A stretch of DNA of 64,000 bases from Histomonas meleagridis 2922-C6/04-290x (lineage: Eukaryota; Protista; Parabasalia): assembly GCA_020184695.1 (NCBI GenBank), contig JAANOX010000126.1:1-64000 (forward strand), in the 5' to 3' direction. The translations under genes were made by a program, and so were the position numbers. Shown here one piece after another: positions 16,984-25,521 of this stretch; within the stretch, counting starts at the first letter, position 1, and every line of letters starts with the position of its first letter. The notes under the pieces were generated by a model, which was not told the origin of the DNA, did no database searches, and worked only from the letters and a program-made list of their open reading frames with translations.

Positions 16984-19900
16984 ATGGCTTGCCGATCAAA
17001 ACCTCCATGTTATCAAAAAGTCATTATCGTTTATTTGAAGACAACAATGGAAGAAACAAAATTCAGTGTTTTTTCCTCTCCAGAGGGATTTTGGTACCTT
17101 GTATGTAGTCCCTGTACTGACAAAATGACATACATAATAACAGTCGACATTACTTCCGGAAACTTGATTTACACAGGAATTCCGTCCATAGATGTTTTTT
17201 CGGATCATTCTCTAGCAGTTAAATCCTTACTTGATTTAAACTTTTTACATAAAGGAAATGGAGATGGTTTAATTGGAGTTGCAATGACAGAAGACTCCAC
17301 AGCAATTGCATATGTTGACAAATCTCAAGTTACAGGGTATATTCCAGGTGGTCATCCTGTTCGTACTATTCGAAATGTGAAATTTATTCATCTTCCAAAA
17401 AATGATAGAGCTCCTAAAACCTCAGCATTTAAAGAATTTCAAGTCAATGACAATCATTATTTTTGTGATACTTATGATCTTACCAATCTTTTTCCTAATA
17501 AATCAACACAACCCGATAATGGCTTTATATGGAACTTAGCATGGAAGAAACCCTTTGAAGTTCTAGGTCTAGGTCATTGTTGTATCAATCTTATTCAAGG
17601 TGTTTGTATGACTTCCAATTTCACCAAATTTGATTTTCAAATAACATACATTGCAAGACGTTCTGTTCTTAATCCAGGCACACGATACAATGCTCGTGGT
17701 CTTAATGATCTTAATTGTCCTGGCAACGAAGTTGAATGTGAATTAATTTTCCAACGCAATAATCAATTTTGGTCCACTCAATGGCGTCGTGGTTCTATTC
17801 CCATTCGATGGAAGACAGTTTTCTCCACCTTATCTTCCCCTAAGCATATAGCCGATCCAATACATTTTGCCGATGGCACAGCAGAATACTTCCGAAGTCT
17901 TCAAGGCCGATTTGGGGAAGATATTCCGATACGAATCATTTCATTATTAGACTCATCAGAGAAAGCTGATGAAAATTCTGAGAAAGACATCAAAACCAAA
18001 TTCCAAGAAGCGATTGAAAAGATATCGAACGCCGGCGTCCGAAATGTTTTTTTAACACCATTTGATCTTAACAAGTTTTTACATTCTAATGGTACCACTG
18101 AATTAATGAATGATTTTTTATCATATTTAGGACCAGTGATTGAATCTGATGGCTTTAATTCAGGGACATTACCATTAACTATTAATGAACACCAAAAAGG
18201 GTTAATGCGTTTTAATTGTGCAGATTCATTAGATCGAACTAATGTTGCATGTTTCCATTATGCTATTAAAGTTACATCAGAATGGTGCATCATGAATAAC
18301 ATTGGATTATCAGGGAAGACGAACACTAATCCAAATTTACCATATTTATTAATAGATCAAAGTATTACTGACTTTTTAATTAATGCATTTATAACTACTG
18401 GTAATGTCGTTTCATATTTATATACGAATACACCTGCAATTAAAACAAATGCAATTACATGTTTTTCATCGACTTTTGTTAATTCAAGTTCATCAGATTC
18501 AGCAATATCTATTAAAAGAAGACTTCAAAACGTAGTTAATGATCCACAACGAATGAAAATAATCGAATTATGGTTAAAACCAATAGAACCTAATTGGATC
18601 ACACGAATTGATTCTCGACATTTATTTATTGTACCACAAGAAAATAGTAGTGAACAATTTCCACGTACACTTATCGGTACTCCAATTAAATCTTTTGAAT
18701 TCCCACAAAATTTAAACATATTAACATTATGTTTACCATGTCCAATGCAATTATTTTCGATTATTATCTTATTATTTCCAGGTCATTTAGATAAATTACC
18801 AAATTGTATCACTATTGAAGGAGGAATGACATTAAATTCCATGAAGAAGATATGTACATTAGATTTACCATTAGTTAAAACGCCGATTTGGTTACGTTAT
18901 CGCTTACGTAATGCAAAGAATTGGGGATTTTCTAATCCTTATTTAGAATATTTACGATTTATTCGATTAATAATTGAAACTAATGATCCTTCATATATCA
19001 TAGGTAATATTAAAGTTGAAGCATTATCATGTTTTTCAAACACTAAATATGATATTTTATATAATCAATATCAAACAAGTAAAGAACATGAAAATGAATT
19101 CTGTGAAATATTTAATCAATATCTTAAATCACCACGTACATGTAAAGATGCAATAGAATTAGAGAAGTCACGAATTATAATGCGAGTAACTGAAGATCAT
19201 CGTAATAATTTATCCATTTTAAATGGATTAAATCCATGGCATGTTGATTCTAACTCACAATTAATATCAGCGCCGTCATCATTTTGCGTATTTTGTGGTT
19301 CTCCTTTAGGTATTAATATCCAAACATATCCATTAATACAAAACAAAAGATTTCCAGGTTTGATTGAAACTACGAAAGTTAAAAAAGTTTTTTCAGTCTG
19401 TAATAAATGTTATGAAATTGCAAATGAAATATCCGAATTTACTAAAGCTTTAGAAGATATAATGCCGGAGCCGAATTTTATAATACCGAAATTTAACATC
19501 GAGAAAATCGATCATGAAATATTATCGAAGAATCAAAGTTATACAACTGATTCGACTTCAGTTCTTCTGAATTTAAATTGTTCTTTGTTTAATAATGATA
19601 TTACACAAAACGATAAATTAGAAATCAAAAAAGATGAAACTCAAGAAATCTCAATTTTCATTGTACAACAAGCAATTGTCTTAAATCTAAATATTAAATC
19701 ATCGAATGATCAATTTATAATAAAGACATTAAATGATGAAGAAATATCACGACGAAATGTAAATAATGAAAATGAATTCATTTTCGAATTTAAAGAACCA
19801 CCGATTACACAAATATTACATTTCAAAATCATTGCGAAAGATAACGTCGAAATATATAAAATTAAAGCATTATATATCACTGCTGGTTGTACTATTGATA

Positions 19901-20262
19901 AGCCATTCACCGCACGAATACAAAACCCATTGTTAATTAAACGAATTAAGTTGCAAGGAAGATATTCACCAAACACAAGAACTGAATCATTTATCATACA
20001 AAATGGTTTAAGAGTGCAGAAATTACACGTAAAAACTGTGGTGGAAAAAGGAGTTAATACGCCATTGTCATTATACGTAGCAATGTATAAGGGAAATCTG
20101 TTGGTAACTACAAAAAGAATAATCTTGCCCGACACAAAAACGAAAACAACTTTGGATTATATTATAGACCAAAGTGGGCTCGATGTGGATTTGGTAAATG
20201 TATATTACTTAGATAGAGTAAATGCGATGAAACCACATAATATAAAGTTAATTGTGAAATGA
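16984..20262 (+). CDS. SAC-domain phosphoinositide phosphatase, SAC9-like, with long C-terminal extension (likely start ATG 17047)
   Basis: Motifs: ARRSVLNPGTRYNARGLN, NEVECELI, WRRGSIPIRW and catalytic CX5R(T) motif RFNCADSLDRTN. A CxxC...CxxC pair lies at FCVFC/VCNKC. Confidence 0.85.
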   Translation: MACRSKPPCYQKVIIVYLKTTMEETKFSVFSSPEGFWYLVCSPCTDKMTYIITVDITSGNLIYTGIPSIDVFSDHSLAVKSLLDLNFLHKGNGDGLIGVAMTEDSTAIAYVDKSQVTGYIPGGHPVRTIRNVKFIHLPKNDRAPKTSAFKEFQVNDNHYFCDTYDLTNLFPNKSTQPDNGFIWNLAWKKPFEVLGLGHCCINLIQGVCMTSNFTKFDFQITYIARRSVLNPGTRYNARGLNDLNCPGNEVECELIFQRNNQFWSTQWRRGSIPIRWKTVFSTLSSPKHIADPIHFADGTAEYFRSLQGRFGEDIPIRIISLLDSSEKADENSEKDIKTKFQEAIEKISNAGVRNVFLTPFDLNKFLHSNGTTELMNDFLSYLGPVIESDGFNSGTLPLTINEHQKGLMRFNCADSLDRTNVACFHYAIKVTSEWCIMNNIGLSGKTNTNPNLPYLLIDQSITDFLINAFITTGNVVSYLYTNTPAIKTNAITCFSSTFVNSSSSDSAISIKRRLQNVVNDPQRMKIIELWLKPIEPNWITRIDSRHLFIVPQENSSEQFPRTLIGTPIKSFEFPQNLNILTLCLPCPMQLFSIIILLFPGHLDKLPNCITIEGGMTLNSMKKICTLDLPLVKTPIWLRYRLRNAKNWGFSNPYLEYLRFIRLIIETNDPSYIIGNIKVEALSCFSNTKYDILYNQYQTSKEHENEFCEIFNQYLKSPRTCKDAIELEKSRIIMRVTEDHRNNLSILNGLNPWHVDSNSQLISAPSSFCVFCGSPLGINIQTYPLIQNKRFPGLIETTKVKKVFSVCNKCYEIANEISEFTKALEDIMPEPNFIIPKFNIEKIDHEILSKNQSYTTDSTSVLLNLNCSLFNNDITQNDKLEIKKDETQEISIFIVQQAIVLNLNIKSSNDQFIIKTLNDEEISRRNVNNENEFIFEFKEPPITQILHFKIIAKDNVEIYKIKALYITAGCTIDKPFTARIQNPLLIKRIKLQGRYSPNTRTESFIIQNGLRVQKLHVKTVVEKGVNTPLSLYVAMYKGNLLVTTKRIILPDTKTKTTLDYIIDQSGLDVDLVNVYYLDRVNAMKPHNIKLIVK

Positions 20263-21259: not shown

Positions 21260-21264
21260 TCATT
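21260..21264 (+). promoter_or_regulatory. Initiator-like element TCATT immediately upstream of the Pin1-CstF77 ATG
   Basis: TCATTTCAATG matches the trichomonad Inr consensus. The motif is short. Confidence 0.5.
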
Positions 21265-21267
21265 TCA

Positions 21268-23649
21268 ATGTCTTTGCCTGGTGGCTGGGAAGTTGTTCCT
21301 CCAGTTCAACAATCTGGAGGAATTCCTCGCTTTTACTATCGCAAGCAATCTAACCCACCTATTTCACAATGGACTCGTCCGTTTGCACCACCTGGTTACG
21401 AAGGAAATTGGCCTACAATTATTCATTGTGCCCATATTCTTCTCAAGCACAAAGAATGTAAACAACCTCTAAGTCACAATAAGCGTAAGCGATCAAATTA
21501 TAGTTTAAATATTTCAAAAGAACAAGCGCTTAAAGAAATCAGGAAAATCCGTGATACTGTCATTGATCGCAGTTCCACAGACCCAGGTATTTTTAGTGTT
21601 TATGCAGAGCGTAAATCTGATTGCGGTTCATATTCTGCAGGTGGTGATTTAAAGTGGACAAAAATCGGTAAACTTCAACCAGCCTTTGAAAAGGCAGCCC
21701 TCCAACTTAAATGTGGCGAAATTTCCGAGCCTACTTTATCACCCTCAGGCTGGCATATAATTAAACGACTTGATGTAACTTTTGGGATTTCGCCACCAAA
21801 TCCACCACCACCACCAGAGCTTGAATTAGATCTTCGCCCTGACACCGACCTACGTACTATTCAATTAATATATAATTTAATGTATAATACTGAAATTGAT
21901 CCAACCAATTCCAAGAATTGGATGGAGTTAATCAACACATATCTTTCAGCCACGCATGAATTCACACGTACTGCGGAACGATTTCTCCGCGGTCTTTTAC
22001 ATTTCCATCCTGGCGATTTTCAAGTTATTTCTTTTTGTTTAGAAAAAGTTAAAGAGCAAAGGCAGAACAAATTTGTTGATGAGATCTATGGTACAGTTTT
22101 ATTATACACATGGGATCCCAATTTCTGGCGCATGTGGATGCAAGATCAATTATCACGTATTCCAACCGAAGACCGGAGCAAAATGTTCATAAAATATAAC
22201 GAAGAAATGTTAGGGCGAGTTGGGTTCACTGTGAATTGCGCTACGTTATGGGTACAATATATTGGACTCTTGAAAGAAGCAAATGCGCCAACTGACTTCA
22301 TTACTATGCAATTAGAGAAGGCATTATCGATAGGTCTAGACAAACCTAATAAGTTATTAGATTACTTGGATAGTTATTTACCAGAGAAGAGACAATTTTA
22401 TGAAGAGAAGATCCAAGCGAATAAGAAAATTGTCGAAAGAAGACTTAAAAGACTTCAAGACATTAAGAATGGAATGGTGAAAGGCGAATCAGACAAACGC
22501 CTAATCGAATGGCAAATATTTTTACGAGAAGAACTTAACAATGAATTAGAGTTACCTGAAGAATTGTTTTGTGAATTAGTTGACTATAATTATCGATTTG
22601 CTTTATCAGTGTTATGGTGGCTGCCATCGATATGGATGGAGTATTGGAGTTTCTTGATCAAGAACAACAAGATCGATCATGCTGACGCTATATTACGCTT
22701 AGGCCGTAAGTCAATTGGTAACACGCCATTATTTGAGTTGAAACGTGTAGAGCATTTGATCAAATATGAGAAATATGATGAAGCAAAAGAGATATTAGAG
22801 AAATTGATCAAGTCACAAGAGCCTTTAAGGACTTCAGCATTGACATTATTGTTTAAAGCAACTTCTAATTTGGTGAATGAAGAAGAAGCATTACATGTAA
22901 TATCAAATAACTTGGATAAACTGAGCCCACAATTCCTAATTAACGCAGCAAAACTTTGCGAAAATAAAATGATCGCGTGGAGCATATTCCAACGTGGCGT
23001 AGATATGTTCCCTGATGATGACTCAATGGTCATCGCGGCTGCTGAATTCTTGGAGAAGAATAGAGACGTTAGAAACACTCGAAGTTTGTTCCAACAAAGT
23101 TTGGATGATAAAACAGTGAGATTCGAAATCCAAAAAAGATTATACGAATTCGAACTTGAAAGAAATGCATCACTCGATCACTTGAATGAAACACAAAAAG
23201 TGTTCAAGAAAAGTGACGTCGATCCGTTTATTTTGTATATGCAAAGATATCGTTTTTTGGATTTGTATCCTTATGATTTAGAAGACTTAAAAGTCATCGC
23301 TCATTTGTCGAAAAACGTTTCAATCGACTTAATAGATAGACAAGATTATTCTGGATACATTACAAGTATGCCACCGATGGGTGCAAACTTGAGTCAGCTA
23401 AAAAGAAATGACGAATGGCTCGAGGAATCAAGCGAAAACTTGAGAAGAGCAACAACGATAGAACAAACTTTGCCAAATCAGCAGGGACCGTTAAACGTAA
23501 AGAAAAGAATGCCACAGGAAGTGCACCATTTGTATAGAGATATACAAAACTGTCAAATTCACTTCCAACCGCCGTCGGTTGATGAGGTGATAAATAGAAT
23601 TTTGGGATTCACGATTCAAGATCCGCATTCTTTGGTGAGACAATATTAA
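21268..23649 (+). CDS. Pin1/Ess1-type WW + parvulin PPIase fused to a CstF-77/Rna14-type HAT-repeat protein
   Basis: WW: LPGGWE...FYYRK...SQWTRP. Parvulin: HCAHILLKH, SDCGSYSAGGDL, LQPAFEKAA, GWHIIKR. A PPNPPPPP linker follows, then HAT repeats and the CstF77-like C-terminal YMQRYRFLDLYPYDLEDLK. Single uninterrupted ORF. Confidence 0.85.
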   Translation: MSLPGGWEVVPPVQQSGGIPRFYYRKQSNPPISQWTRPFAPPGYEGNWPTIIHCAHILLKHKECKQPLSHNKRKRSNYSLNISKEQALKEIRKIRDTVIDRSSTDPGIFSVYAERKSDCGSYSAGGDLKWTKIGKLQPAFEKAALQLKCGEISEPTLSPSGWHIIKRLDVTFGISPPNPPPPPELELDLRPDTDLRTIQLIYNLMYNTEIDPTNSKNWMELINTYLSATHEFTRTAERFLRGLLHFHPGDFQVISFCLEKVKEQRQNKFVDEIYGTVLLYTWDPNFWRMWMQDQLSRIPTEDRSKMFIKYNEEMLGRVGFTVNCATLWVQYIGLLKEANAPTDFITMQLEKALSIGLDKPNKLLDYLDSYLPEKRQFYEEKIQANKKIVERRLKRLQDIKNGMVKGESDKRLIEWQIFLREELNNELELPEELFCELVDYNYRFALSVLWWLPSIWMEYWSFLIKNNKIDHADAILRLGRKSIGNTPLFELKRVEHLIKYEKYDEAKEILEKLIKSQEPLRTSALTLLFKATSNLVNEEEALHVISNNLDKLSPQFLINAAKLCENKMIAWSIFQRGVDMFPDDDSMVIAAAEFLEKNRDVRNTRSLFQQSLDDKTVRFEIQKRLYEFELERNASLDHLNETQKVFKKSDVDPFILYMQRYRFLDLYPYDLEDLKVIAHLSKNVSIDLIDRQDYSGYITSMPPMGANLSQLKRNDEWLEESSENLRRATTIEQTLPNQQGPLNVKKRMPQEVHHLYRDIQNCQIHFQPPSVDEVINRILGFTIQDPHSLVRQY

Positions 23650-23650
23650 A
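23647..23650 (+). promoter_or_regulatory. TAAA polyadenylation-signal-like motif overlapping the stop codon (same pattern at eIF2-gamma, ARL6IP1-like, BEACH, CCDC113, BspA and Sec24 stops)
   Basis: These genes end in TAA followed by A. UAAA overlapping the stop is the described Trichomonas vaginalis poly(A) signal. High AT content weakens the inference. Confidence 0.4.
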
Positions 23651-25521
23651 TAAATAAAATATTATTATGAGGGTGCTTAATTTGTATTAGGGTCGGTTTT
23701 TTTACTCAGAAGAAAAGAATTCTTAAGAGGGACTGTGGCCGTTTTTTATTAAATTTTCGAGAGCAGTGTAAGCGAAAAAAACTCACAAAAAATGAATATT
23801 ATCCTTAATAAAATCAAGCCAAATTTTTTCTATGTTACAGAGGTACCTTAATAAATATAATTTTATAATTTATTTTAAAAAAATTTGAAATCGCAAATTT
23901 ACTGATTTTTTTGAAATTCTCAAAATATTGAAAAATTTTTATTATAATTGAATATTTTGGTTCATTTATTATCAAATAATAGTGAAGTTAAAATGGAATT
24001 GTTTTTATATTACAAAAAATTCCACAATGGTATTTTAAAATTTGAAGTACCATTAAATAATCAATATTTTGTATTTATAACAGCTTTATCAAATTTCTTT
24101 AATACATTTTAGAGAAATTTTCCATTCAAGCAAAGACAAATATATATGATGATGTGACATGTGAATTGAAATACATTTTAAAATATCACAAAAACATGAA
24201 AAAAAGATTTTAATGAAATTAATGGATACTCTATAATAAAAATCAGAAGAATTTTGATTATTGTAAATGTTATTCTTTAAAATAATGCATTTCTTTATTG
24301 AAATGCATTTATTGTAAATTTTGACAAAAATAGAAAATAAATAGAATTTAATGATATTACATCAGCAACTTCAATTTAGAAGTATATGTTGAATAATATT
24401 TACATAAAACAATTATGTTATATCAACAAAAATGAACAAAAGGCTGTGGCAACATGTTTCTTTGTGGTAATGCGGTTTTTGAGTTGACTTTTTGTGTGCA
24501 ATGCTAACTTTTTGTAAGCAAATATTTGGAATCAAAAAAGAAACGAATGAATTCACTTAAAGACATGTGATATAGGGTTTAATCTTTATGTTTATTAATA
24601 TTTTCAAGTTATATAAAAATCCCATTGTGGAATTTTTCGCTTACACTACTTTTAAATATTATGTGAATATTTTTAATGATTATTCGTATTAGATAAAGAA
24701 TTGTTTTTATAAGTTTGGTAGATCTGCAAATAACATGTTTTCAAGTGCACAAGTATAAGCGATTTAAACATATATTATACATGTATAATTAATCGTAAAA
24801 ATTGATTTTCTGCAATTTCCTATACTCAAAATTCATGTTCATTTACACATTATTTAAAGATTCATTAAACACTTCTGAAGTACGGGAGTCAACCAACGAT
24901 CCTACTTACAGAATTTCTTTTAAATATAAAGTTAAATGCACAATCATTAATACTGATCAGGCTATCCTAAAAAATCTTCTAACACAATTATACAGCAAAA
25001 TATTTATATTTTTAATTTTTGGAATTTAATTGAAAAAGCTTTGTAAAAAAATGAATACCGGGATGAAATTATGAGTTGTATAAAGTTGGTTGATTTTTAC
25101 TCATTTTAAGTTTAGATTAAGTAATTATCTTTGTAGAATATCTTGATTTAATATTTTGAAAATCTAGTTCGAGTAACTCTTAATTTTTAATTGTATTTCT
25201 GCTTTTTATTGGATTTTTTCCTATATATACAGTGATATCACTTCTGATCAAACCCTACAATAAATTATTTTCCTATTTATCCAATTCTCAATTTTTTTTG
25301 TTCATCATCTCGAACCAAATTATATATAGCACTTTCTCTAGAGAAAATACATGCCCTAAGAGTTTGAAAATTTTAATAATAATAATTCTACACTTGTCTA
25401 CTTCACCTCTTGATGATTTAAAACATCCTTCTTCAAATACATCTGTTTCACATAAACTCCTATGAACTTTATCATCATTTTAATTATTCCATCCTTTTGA
25501 TAGGATAAACTTTCAACATAT

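Follow-up and report, generated by a model that had tools for sequence, protein, structure and literature searches.

A Pin1/Ess1-type WW-parvulin fused to a CstF-77-type HAT protein in Histomonas meleagridis, a putative ortholog of TvPar102 of Trichomonas vaginalis

In yeast, both genetic and biochemical work has long connected Ess1/Pin1 with Ssu72, Pcf11 and termination. To our knowledge, no stable physical link of Ess1/Pin1 to the cleavage factors is known, and a natural fusion that has been conserved provides independent evidence for such a link from evolution. The yeast connection runs from Ess1 through Ssu72 to Pcf11 (PMC4350670). The catalytic residues of Pin1 are H59, C113, S154 and H157, together with S115 and F134 (PMC7994582). 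In human CstF-77, the monkeytail at residues 607-664 binds CstF-64 (PMC6294498). The closest described protein is TvPar102 of Trichomonas vaginalis (TVAG_325610, UniProt: A2EWG2), a protein of ~102 kDa and unknown function that combines WW, PpiC and Suf domains and is the largest parvulin in a review of parasite parvulins (PMC11357558). That review omits a stand-alone CstF-77, the monkeytail and the state of the catalytic residues (PMC11357558), and in a published survey no CstF-77 is listed for T. vaginalis.

The window analysed here is a stretch of 64,000 nucleotides from H. meleagridis, and all coordinates given below lie on its plus strand. Positions 21268-23649 form a single open reading frame of 793 amino acids which starts with ATG, with the same extent and length as in the initial annotation. 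Its product consists of a WW domain, a parvulin domain and a polyproline linker, followed by a HAT domain of the CstF-77 type, which ends in RYRFLDLYP, and by a C-terminal tail. The WW, PpiC and Suf architecture is shared with TvPar102, as compared by the published description, and by this criterion the gene is probably the H. meleagridis ortholog of TvPar102. The fusion architecture is already published for T. vaginalis (PMC11357558) and is not new, contrary to the initial annotation, which knew of no description. Moreover, two named orthologs, TRFO_26094 of T. foetus and KAK8884169 of T. musculus, have both Pfam domains precomputed in NCBI and UniProt, and the architecture is conserved in the parabasalid-like sequences. 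In current annotation the fused proteins are named isomerase or hypothetical protein only.

Twelve collinear WW-parvulin-HAT sequences were found with 35-50% identity, namely the window ORF, the T. foetus and T. musculus proteins and nine uncultured sequences, one of which (P0040) is fused and 50% identical to the window protein. The 11 aligned full-length sequences have 35-47% identity to the window protein and their domains are joined without a break. A 13th sequence, P0041, has Suf only, lacks the N-terminus and is probably truncated. On these sequence comparisons, the natural fusion proposed initially is confirmed as a genuine and conserved one between a Pin1/Ess1-type WW-parvulin and a CstF-77-type HAT protein. 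A word-based profile search, which depends on word sharing and did not return TvPar102, found no fusion beyond the parabasalid-like set. No cluster with the WW-parvulin-HAT architecture was found in the ESM Atlas, where clusters of at least 50 members were searched, which makes this result uninformative.

The N-terminal module is of the Pin1/Ess1 type by sequence and fold. The parvulin domain (aa 51-170; 21418..21777) carries a Rotamase match (Pfam: PF00639) at aa 56-167 with 67 bits, the cut-off being 21.7. In HMMER searches of the PDB the module matches Ess1 and Pin1 best, Ess1 aligning with aa 46-168 (E 7e-24) and full-length Pin1 with aa 2-168 (E 1e-15). The two folds are common to Pin1/Ess1 and the fused protein at 30-34% identity, and Foldseek matched the catalytic domain of Pin1 with a TMt of 0.79 and an RMSD of 2.7. 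The WW domain (aa 3-38; 21274..21381) did not score with the Pfam WW model at E<=1 on the window protein and is therefore divergent. Its assignment is based on the alignment with Pin1/Ess1, which begins at residue 2-3, on W7, Y23, W35 and P38, which are invariant in the fused family, and on a three-stranded sheet in the AlphaFold (AF2) model (strands 7-10, 22-25 and 32-34). Between both domains lies a conserved linker (aa 39-50; 21382..21417) with a PPGY...WP pattern, in which all of 11 aligned sequences share P42, G43, W48 and P49, whereas the corresponding linker is flexible in Pin1 and helical in Ess1.

The catalytic set of Pin1 is retained. H56, K60, S117-D118-C119, S160 and H163 correspond to Pin1 H59, K63, S111-D112-C113, S154 and H157 and all are family-invariant, which bears out the two histidines and the SDC motif recognised initially. 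The equivalents of Pin1 H59, C113, S154, H157 and F134 are invariant in 12 of the 12 fused sequences tabulated, that of S115 (S121 in the window protein) is invariant in the 11-sequence alignment and L122 is conserved as well, while the position of Pin1 Q131 is not conserved in the fused family. The genome encodes five WW-parvulins. H59, C113, S154 and H157 are all retained in the fused one alone.

The phosphate-binding residues are kept in part. The K63 equivalent is invariant in the fused family, Pin1 position 68 is occupied by R in 10 of 12 sequences and by K in two, the window protein and P0011, and a conserved basic stretch (SHNK.K) follows in the phosphate loop. Position 69, which is R69 and the second basic residue of this loop in Pin1, has N, Q, T or S instead in all but one of the 12 sequences. 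Furthermore, WW loop 1 is longer than in Pin1/Ess1 and variable, and an Arg is not conserved at the equivalents of Pin1 R14, S16 and R17. The change of R69 to N/Q in most members and the loop 1 without a conserved Arg make the phospho-specificity uncertain. Compared to Pin1/Ess1, the fused protein also has ~620 more C-terminal residues.

These residues begin with a proline-rich linker (aa 171-185; 21778..21822), in which P181 is family-invariant and which includes, at about aa 176-184 of the translation, the polyproline stretch that had been noticed before. The HAT domain follows at aa 186-680 (21823..23307). The Suf model (Pfam: PF05843) scores 80.7-82.2 bits on the fused protein, with a cut-off of 24.7. 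In the HMMER search of the PDB with the single sequence, CstF-77 aligns with aa 270-679 at E ~2e-6. With the fused-family profile the match to human CstF-77 reaches E 4e-23 and extends over positions 202-684 against chain positions 16-546. The AF2 pLDDT is ~90 across the domain. The RYRFLDLYP motif (aa 660-668; 23245..23271), rightly called CstF-77-like in the initial annotation, closes HAT-C. Its R660, F663 and D665-P668 are invariant, and its human counterpart is RYKFMDLYP at ~527-535, at the end of HAT-C of CstF-77. HMMER and AlphaFold thus recover the domains listed initially, the parvulin and HAT parts by Pfam and PDB and the WW part by the Pin1 alignment and the AF2 sheet. A full-length HAT domain with HAT-N and HAT-C, RYxFxDLYP and a monkeytail-like motif occur in the fused protein in the identical order as in CstF-77/Rna14, but the fused HAT is very divergent with 15-17% identity in Foldseek alignments. 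In contrast to the fused protein, none of 150 canonical CstF-77 representatives has an N-terminal Pin1 module. The inspection of Suf matches covered the best 150 of 3158.

The C-terminal tail (aa 681-793; 23308..23646) is conserved across the family and has low AF2 confidence. Its pLDDT is 37-84 per 10-residue block, with values under 55 from residue ~731 onwards apart from block 771-780 (67), and two short helices are modelled at 750-759 and 771-780. With hhalign, the profile of the fused tails was compared to a motif profile built from canonical CstF-77 tails alone, and a monkeytail-like motif was found at aa 747-783 (23506..23616) with a probability of 85%, P 6e-6 and a score of 28.2 over 37 columns. 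The controls, a reversed template and 40 column shuffles, scored at most 12.2. The motif maps to human CstF-77 ~608-650, which is within the monkeytail. The match is significant at the profile-profile level only, as the canonical-only monkeytail HMM found nothing in single fused sequences at default filters and gave E 0.15-2 with filters off. Despite these E-values, the top matches with filters off lay at the correct positions. The tail alone (aa 676-793) gave no CstF-77/Rna14 match against the PDB and one spurious match to a designed repeat. At the profile-profile level the tail thus carries a monkeytail motif, a candidate CstF-64 hinge-binding site, and CstF-64 binding is predicted.

The fused protein is not the only CstF-77 of the genome. 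A second, stand-alone CstF-77 of 485 aa is encoded on another contig (C83) and bears this name in NCBI. Both proteins belong to the Suf family, and their HAT parts have 18% identity. The stand-alone protein scores 250 bits with Suf versus about 81-83 bits for the fused one, matches PDB CstF-77 with E 3e-37 versus 2e-6, and reaches 180-270 bits with canonical CstF-77s. It is far more canonical, and the fused HAT is therefore a divergent paralog. The stand-alone form is HAT-only, ends at a RYxF-like motif without a tail and scores at background against the monkeytail motif, so that between the two paralogs of this genome the tail is present in the fused one only. It is conserved in T. foetus (TRFO_25797). 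We considered C83 as a contaminant contig and rejected this, since its base composition is genome-typical and close T. foetus orthologs exist. The free tree without outgroups did not resolve the placement of the fused clade. A tree constrained to a parabasalid CstF-77 duplication was 62 lnL units above the free search (p-AU 0.995), and a common parabasalid origin of the fused and stand-alone CstF-77 is not rejected.

Candidate partners and substrates of the fused protein are found among the other genes of the genome. The Rpb1 of Histomonas ends with 16 perfect YSPTSPS heptads, and Ssu72, two CID proteins and two CSTF2_hinge proteins are encoded in the genome. The T. vaginalis Rpb1 is without CTD heptads (PMC2475620), so the non-canonical trichomonad CTD assumed initially applies to T. 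vaginalis but not to Histomonas. Since T. vaginalis keeps the fusion and yet has no heptads, the CTD cannot be the sole substrate across the family.

The most likely role of the protein is that of a CstF scaffold which carries its own isomerase, directed at the CTD. Its HAT and monkeytail region would serve as a scaffold of the CstF/CF IA type, in which the fused HAT would form dimers, possibly with the HAT-only paralog as the partner, and the tail would tether the CstF-64-hinge proteins of the genome. At the N-terminus, the Pin1 module would bind Ser-Pro bonds and isomerise them, the canonical YSPTSPS repeats of the Histomonas CTD being the most plausible target. The cleavage factor itself would then deliver the isomerisation that assists Ssu72 and Pcf11 at 3' ends in yeast. 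We give a TvPar102 ortholog acting as a CstF scaffold that delivers CTD prolyl isomerisation a rough probability of 0.55, and it is reasonable to infer a hard-wired coupling of isomerisation and polyadenylation machinery. A stronger version, which we put forward tentatively and do not favour at present, is that in parabasalids the Pin1-fused paralog, rather than the HAT-only CstF-77, might be the scaffold that binds CstF-64, in which case the only catalytically canonical Pin1 would be a CstF subunit. If true, this would be a natural 'Rosetta-stone' proof that CTD prolyl isomerisation is integral to 3'-end formation and termination.

The stand-alone CstF-77 could perform the canonical function alone, and the fused protein may be a neo-functionalised paralog. 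It would then be the Pin1/Ess1 of the cell, with a HAT part scaffolding another nuclear complex or chromatin silencing, while the stand-alone form does 3'-end processing. The far more canonical scores of the latter and the long stem of the fused clade (1.96 substitutions per site) fit this explanation. One database name of the T. musculus ortholog mentions rDNA silencing, but this name was transferred automatically from Ess1 and is no evidence. Against neo-functionalisation, the layout of CstF-77 is kept entirely in the fused protein, with RYxFxDLYP and with the monkeytail-like motif that is absent from the stand-alone form. Both segments are among the best-conserved of the family, an argument that partner binding has been retained. 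We therefore regard neo-functionalisation as rather unlikely, if worth keeping in mind, and prefer the CstF scaffold with a CTD-directed isomerase.

Alternatively, the isomerase could act inside a CstF-like complex instead of on Pol II. It would then be a WW-PPIase that works on proline-rich partners independently of phosphorylation and thereby serves as an assembly chaperone. The loss of R69, the variable WW loop 1 and the retention of the fusion in T. vaginalis without CTD heptads are in line with this. Moreover, one hinge protein (C190) has a P/Y/Q-rich C-terminal tail with PPxY-like motifs that could offer such a partner. However, K63, R/K68 and the conserved basic loop are kept, and Histomonas has a canonical CTD, Ssu72 and CID proteins. 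Action confined to the complex is hence improbable in our view, and a CTD-directed isomerase on a CstF scaffold is preferred.

The initial annotation had also raised the question whether the HAT part is closer to another family such as Prp39, in which case the fusion would link Pin1 with splicing instead of polyadenylation. A sub-threshold HAT_PRP39_C match of 28-29 bits and an outgroup-rooted quick tree, in which the fused clade joined Prp39 with SH-aLRT 91, point in this direction, but this join was flagged as long-branch attraction and the tree was therefore not used for classification. In contrast, canonical CstF-77s score up to 123 bits with the fused-HAT HMM (median 61), compared to 20 for Prp39 and 2 for Syf1. 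The HAT proteins among the 60 PDB matches listed are CstF-77 chains only, and Foldseek places CstF-77 (2ooe, 6uro) first, followed by Rna14, Prpf39 and SART3. RYxFxDLYP and the monkeytail are CstF-77 features, and the genome has a separate, clear Prp39. Pfam, the PDB search, Foldseek and the family HMM together place the HAT part nearer to CstF-77, with Prp39 and Syf1 more distant, and the Prp39 assignment is disfavoured as very improbable. That two neighbouring genes were joined by an assembly or annotation error is hardly credible, given the uninterrupted ORF in independent T. foetus and T. musculus assemblies and in at least nine metagenome/SRA contigs, and the conserved domain junction with its invariant proline.

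The division into a HAT-only CstF-77 and a paralog with Pin1, HAT and monkeytail parts, and the canonical CTD in Histomonas versus none in Trichomonas, give testable predictions on the co-evolution of the CTD code and 3' processing. Tritrichomonas or Trichomonas would be a tractable system, in which the association of an isomerase with CstF could be read from one protein.

An Inr-like TCATT (21260..21264), read from the sequence 8 nt 5' of the ATG, presumably resembles the trichomonad initiator consensus. The TAA stop codon lies within TAAATAAATAAAA (23647..23659), which we take to be of the UAAA type, like the trichomonad poly(A) signal.

A single uninterrupted ORF of 793 aa occupies positions 21268-23649 (+) of the window, with 35-41% G+C compared to 20-27% in the flanks. 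Pfam annotates a parvulin domain (PF00639) at aa 56-167 with 67 bits and Suf/CstF-77 (PF05843) in three stretches with 80.7 bits. In a PDB search, aa 2-168 aligned with full-length Pin1 (E 1e-15), aa 46-168 with Ess1 (E 7e-24) and residues 270-679 with CstF-77 (E about 2e-6); no HAT family other than CstF-77 was among the 60 PDB matches listed. The RYRFLDLYP motif lies at aa 660-668 and the polyproline linker was likewise seen, so that each element named in the initial annotation (WW, parvulin, polyproline linker, HAT and RYRFLDLYP) is present, with the caveat that the WW domain is too divergent to score with the Pfam WW model. [quoted passage not shown] It holds a PPxY-like motif immediately C-terminal to the WW domain, and its W-P-P element is also present in the stand-alone paralogs. 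By sequence reading, an Inr-like TCATT precedes the ATG by 8 nt, and a TAAATAAATAAAA run contains the stop codon; we take these to resemble ordinary trichomonad transcription-unit signals.

The most probable reading, at roughly 0.55, is a CstF/CF IA-type scaffold with a CTD-directed prolyl isomerase of its own. The HAT and tail part would serve as scaffold, and the N-terminal isomerase would be directed at prolines of the CTD. The Pin1-CstF-77 fusion is a testable lead of moderate interest.

The Suf model was run against the whole H. meleagridis genome (G000; 43.1 Mb, 281 contigs), where contig C83 gave a far stronger match (248 bits) than the fused gene. One protein encoded in this genome matches an NCBI H. 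meleagridis entry with 100% identity. This locus (C83:77046-78380, minus strand; L009:1417-2871) encodes a stand-alone 485-aa ORF with a Suf score of 250 bits and a PDB CstF-77 match of E 3e-37, and NCBI names the protein CstF-77. Its orthologs of about 482-494 aa include T. foetus TRFO_25797 and many uncultured relatives, and the family profile matches canonical CstF-77s across eukaryotes with 180-270 bits, the named ones being Pharyngomonas, Nolandella, Chara and a lycophyte. The remaining Suf-positive ORFs are Prp39 (C79) and Syf1 (C2). The fused protein is not the sole CstF-77 of H. meleagridis. Its HAT domain matches the stand-alone family with 98.4% probability (hhalign, E 1e-14) at an identity of just 18% which, together with the stronger match on C83, indicates a divergent paralog of CstF-77. 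The parabasalid stand-alone proteins are HAT-only, about 485 aa long, without the monkeytail and the CstF-50-binding linker. For T. vaginalis, a published survey has no CstF-77 (PMC9912109, supplementary table).

In the main rival reading, the HAT-only CstF-77 would handle 3' processing and the fused HAT would have another role, which we regard as rather unlikely. Stand-alone CstF-77 proteins terminate at an RYxF-like motif, and the fused proteins extend past it by about 115-125 conserved residues. Searched against 119 canonical CstF-77 tails, the fused-tail HMM matched two C-terminal tails (E 3e-5 and 8e-5). A monkeytail motif profile built from canonical tails only (motif found in 90 of the 119) gave no significant hit to single fused sequences, though the best matches were at the expected positions. 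In a profile-profile comparison the fused tail aligned with the whole motif, 37 columns, at aa 747-783 of the window protein (probability 85%, P 6e-6, score 28.2); reversed and 40 column-shuffled control templates stayed at or below 12.2, and the stand-alone family scored 11.7 with its C-terminus. The motif corresponds to residues 608-650 or so of human CstF-77, within the monkeytail (607-664), whose deletion abolishes functional CstF-64 interaction (PMC6294498). The AlphaFold model has two short helices of low confidence here, which would fit a segment that folds on a partner. Two proteins with the CstF-64 hinge domain are encoded in the genome, both on the minus strand (C190:163958-164125, L022:1075-1665; C80:71108-71290, L023:1330-1704). 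As the motif is found in the fused but not in the stand-alone tail and hinge proteins are encoded, only the Pin1-fused paralog apparently could bind a CstF-64-like partner. Both hinge proteins are small and lack an RRM in the ORF; the tail of one is rich in Pro, Tyr and Gln and contains PPxY-like motifs. In H. meleagridis, separate proteins may provide the RNA-binding and the hinge function of CstF-64.

Pin1 positions were transferred to the fused family via a HMMER alignment (residue roles: PMC7994582). H59, K63, C113, S154, H157, L122 and F134 are kept in 12/12 fused sequences. Position 68 carries a basic residue (R or K), 11 of the 12 have N, Q, T or S at position 69, and the WW domain has a long, variable loop 1. 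These features make catalysis likely and leave strict phospho-specificity uncertain. Four further WW-parvulins of 154-163 aa and one truncated copy were detected in the genome (C126:337556-337846, C31:47548-47886, C280:7112-7432, C159:30408-30686 and C221:70849-71058; loci L016 and L018-L021), the C221 locus being nearly identical to the C31 gene but truncated. Each of the four has at least one catalytic position substituted (e.g. H59C/Q/K, C113D/A), which makes the fused protein the strongest candidate for the organism's functional Pin1/Ess1. A basic residue at position 68 or 69 is absent from the other WW-parvulins of the genome.

The single Rpb1 gene (C69:261398-264772, minus strand; L026; 1736-aa frame) encodes 16 perfect YSPTSPS repeats at the C-terminus, and its final 260 residues hold 49 Ser-Pro sites, so the premise of a non-canonical CTD was wrong for Histomonas. 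Ssu72 (185 bits) is also encoded, as are two CID-domain proteins, so that the genome holds the canonical substrate together with its readers. Pcf11 and Rna14 are partners within CF IA. Yeast Ess1 supplies cis-proline to Ssu72 and tips CTD binding from Nrd1 towards Pcf11 (PMC4350670). In a variant of the scaffold reading, the isomerase would target proline-rich partners within the complex; this would suit T. vaginalis, whose Pol II has no heptads (PMC2475620), and we consider it improbable. The CTD is sharply divergent within Parabasalia, canonical in H. meleagridis and reported as heptad-free in T. vaginalis.

That the fused HAT belongs to Prp39 or another HAT family is highly improbable, as profile, structure and HMM agree on the CstF-77 type. 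The fused-family profile covers the whole HAT domain of human CstF-77 (E 4e-23), and the AlphaFold model (mean pLDDT 84.4, HAT region about 90) best matches CstF-77 and Rna14, followed by Prpf39 and SART3. The fused-HAT HMM scores canonical CstF-77s with a median of 61 and a maximum of 123 bits, and the Prp39 and Syf1 of H. meleagridis with 20 and 2 bits. The fused HAT is CstF-77-like. Tree reconstruction recovered two fully supported clades, one fused and one stand-alone, each on a long stem. Outgroup rooting on Prp39 and Syf1 placed the fused clade with Prp39, a join that the tool flagged as long-branch attraction; without outgroups the clade's placement was unresolved. One clade of both groups was not rejected (AU test, p-AU 0.995) and the constrained tree beat the free search by 62 lnL units, so a duplication of CstF-77 within the parabasalid lineage explains the data most simply, mutual attraction of the two long branches being a caveat.

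Among 5.8 billion proteins searched, Tritrichomonas foetus TRFO_26094 (810 aa, 46% identity) and T. musculus KAK8884169 (859 aa) are full-length collinear relatives, and metagenome/SRA assemblies add 8 clusters with identities down to 32%. Every full-length relative has both Pfam domains, and the 11-sequence alignment keeps the junction and an invariant linker proline, with no break between the Pin1 and HAT halves in any sequence. An assembly or annotation artefact is therefore very unlikely, the least probable of the alternatives, and the fusion is real and conserved. A profile search added one fused member (P0040) and one with Suf only (P0041), which is probably N-terminally truncated. A Pin1-like domain was found in 0 of 150 canonical CstF-77 representatives, and in a profile word search the WW-parvulin-HAT fusion was met solely in the parabasalid-like set; an ESM Atlas search for the architecture was uninformative. 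This distribution covers the best 150 of 3158 Suf matches, and the fusion may occur elsewhere. The initial annotation knew of no description, yet the same WW, PpiC and Suf architecture is recorded for the T. vaginalis parvulin TvPar102 (TVAG_325610, A2EWG2) in a 2024 review of protozoan PPIases, with its function listed as unknown (PMC11357558); no other mention was found in the literature searched. Databases name the fused orthologs only 'peptidylprolyl isomerase', 'hypothetical protein' or by an Ess1-derived GO phrase. New are the CstF-77 paralog relationship, the monkeytail asymmetry, a catalytic site that among the genome's WW-parvulins is intact in the fused protein alone, and the canonical Histomonas CTD.

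Upstream, a 1092-aa ORF (window 16984-20262, +) contains a C-x-D-S-L-D-R-T-N stretch in its translation; SAC-domain phosphoinositide phosphatases have a similar catalytic motif. A decayed piece of the fused gene of about 200 nt is found at C153:99119-99349 (L004:1516-1708); with 62% amino-acid identity to aa 339-405, several stops and one frameshift, it is probably a pseudogene remnant.
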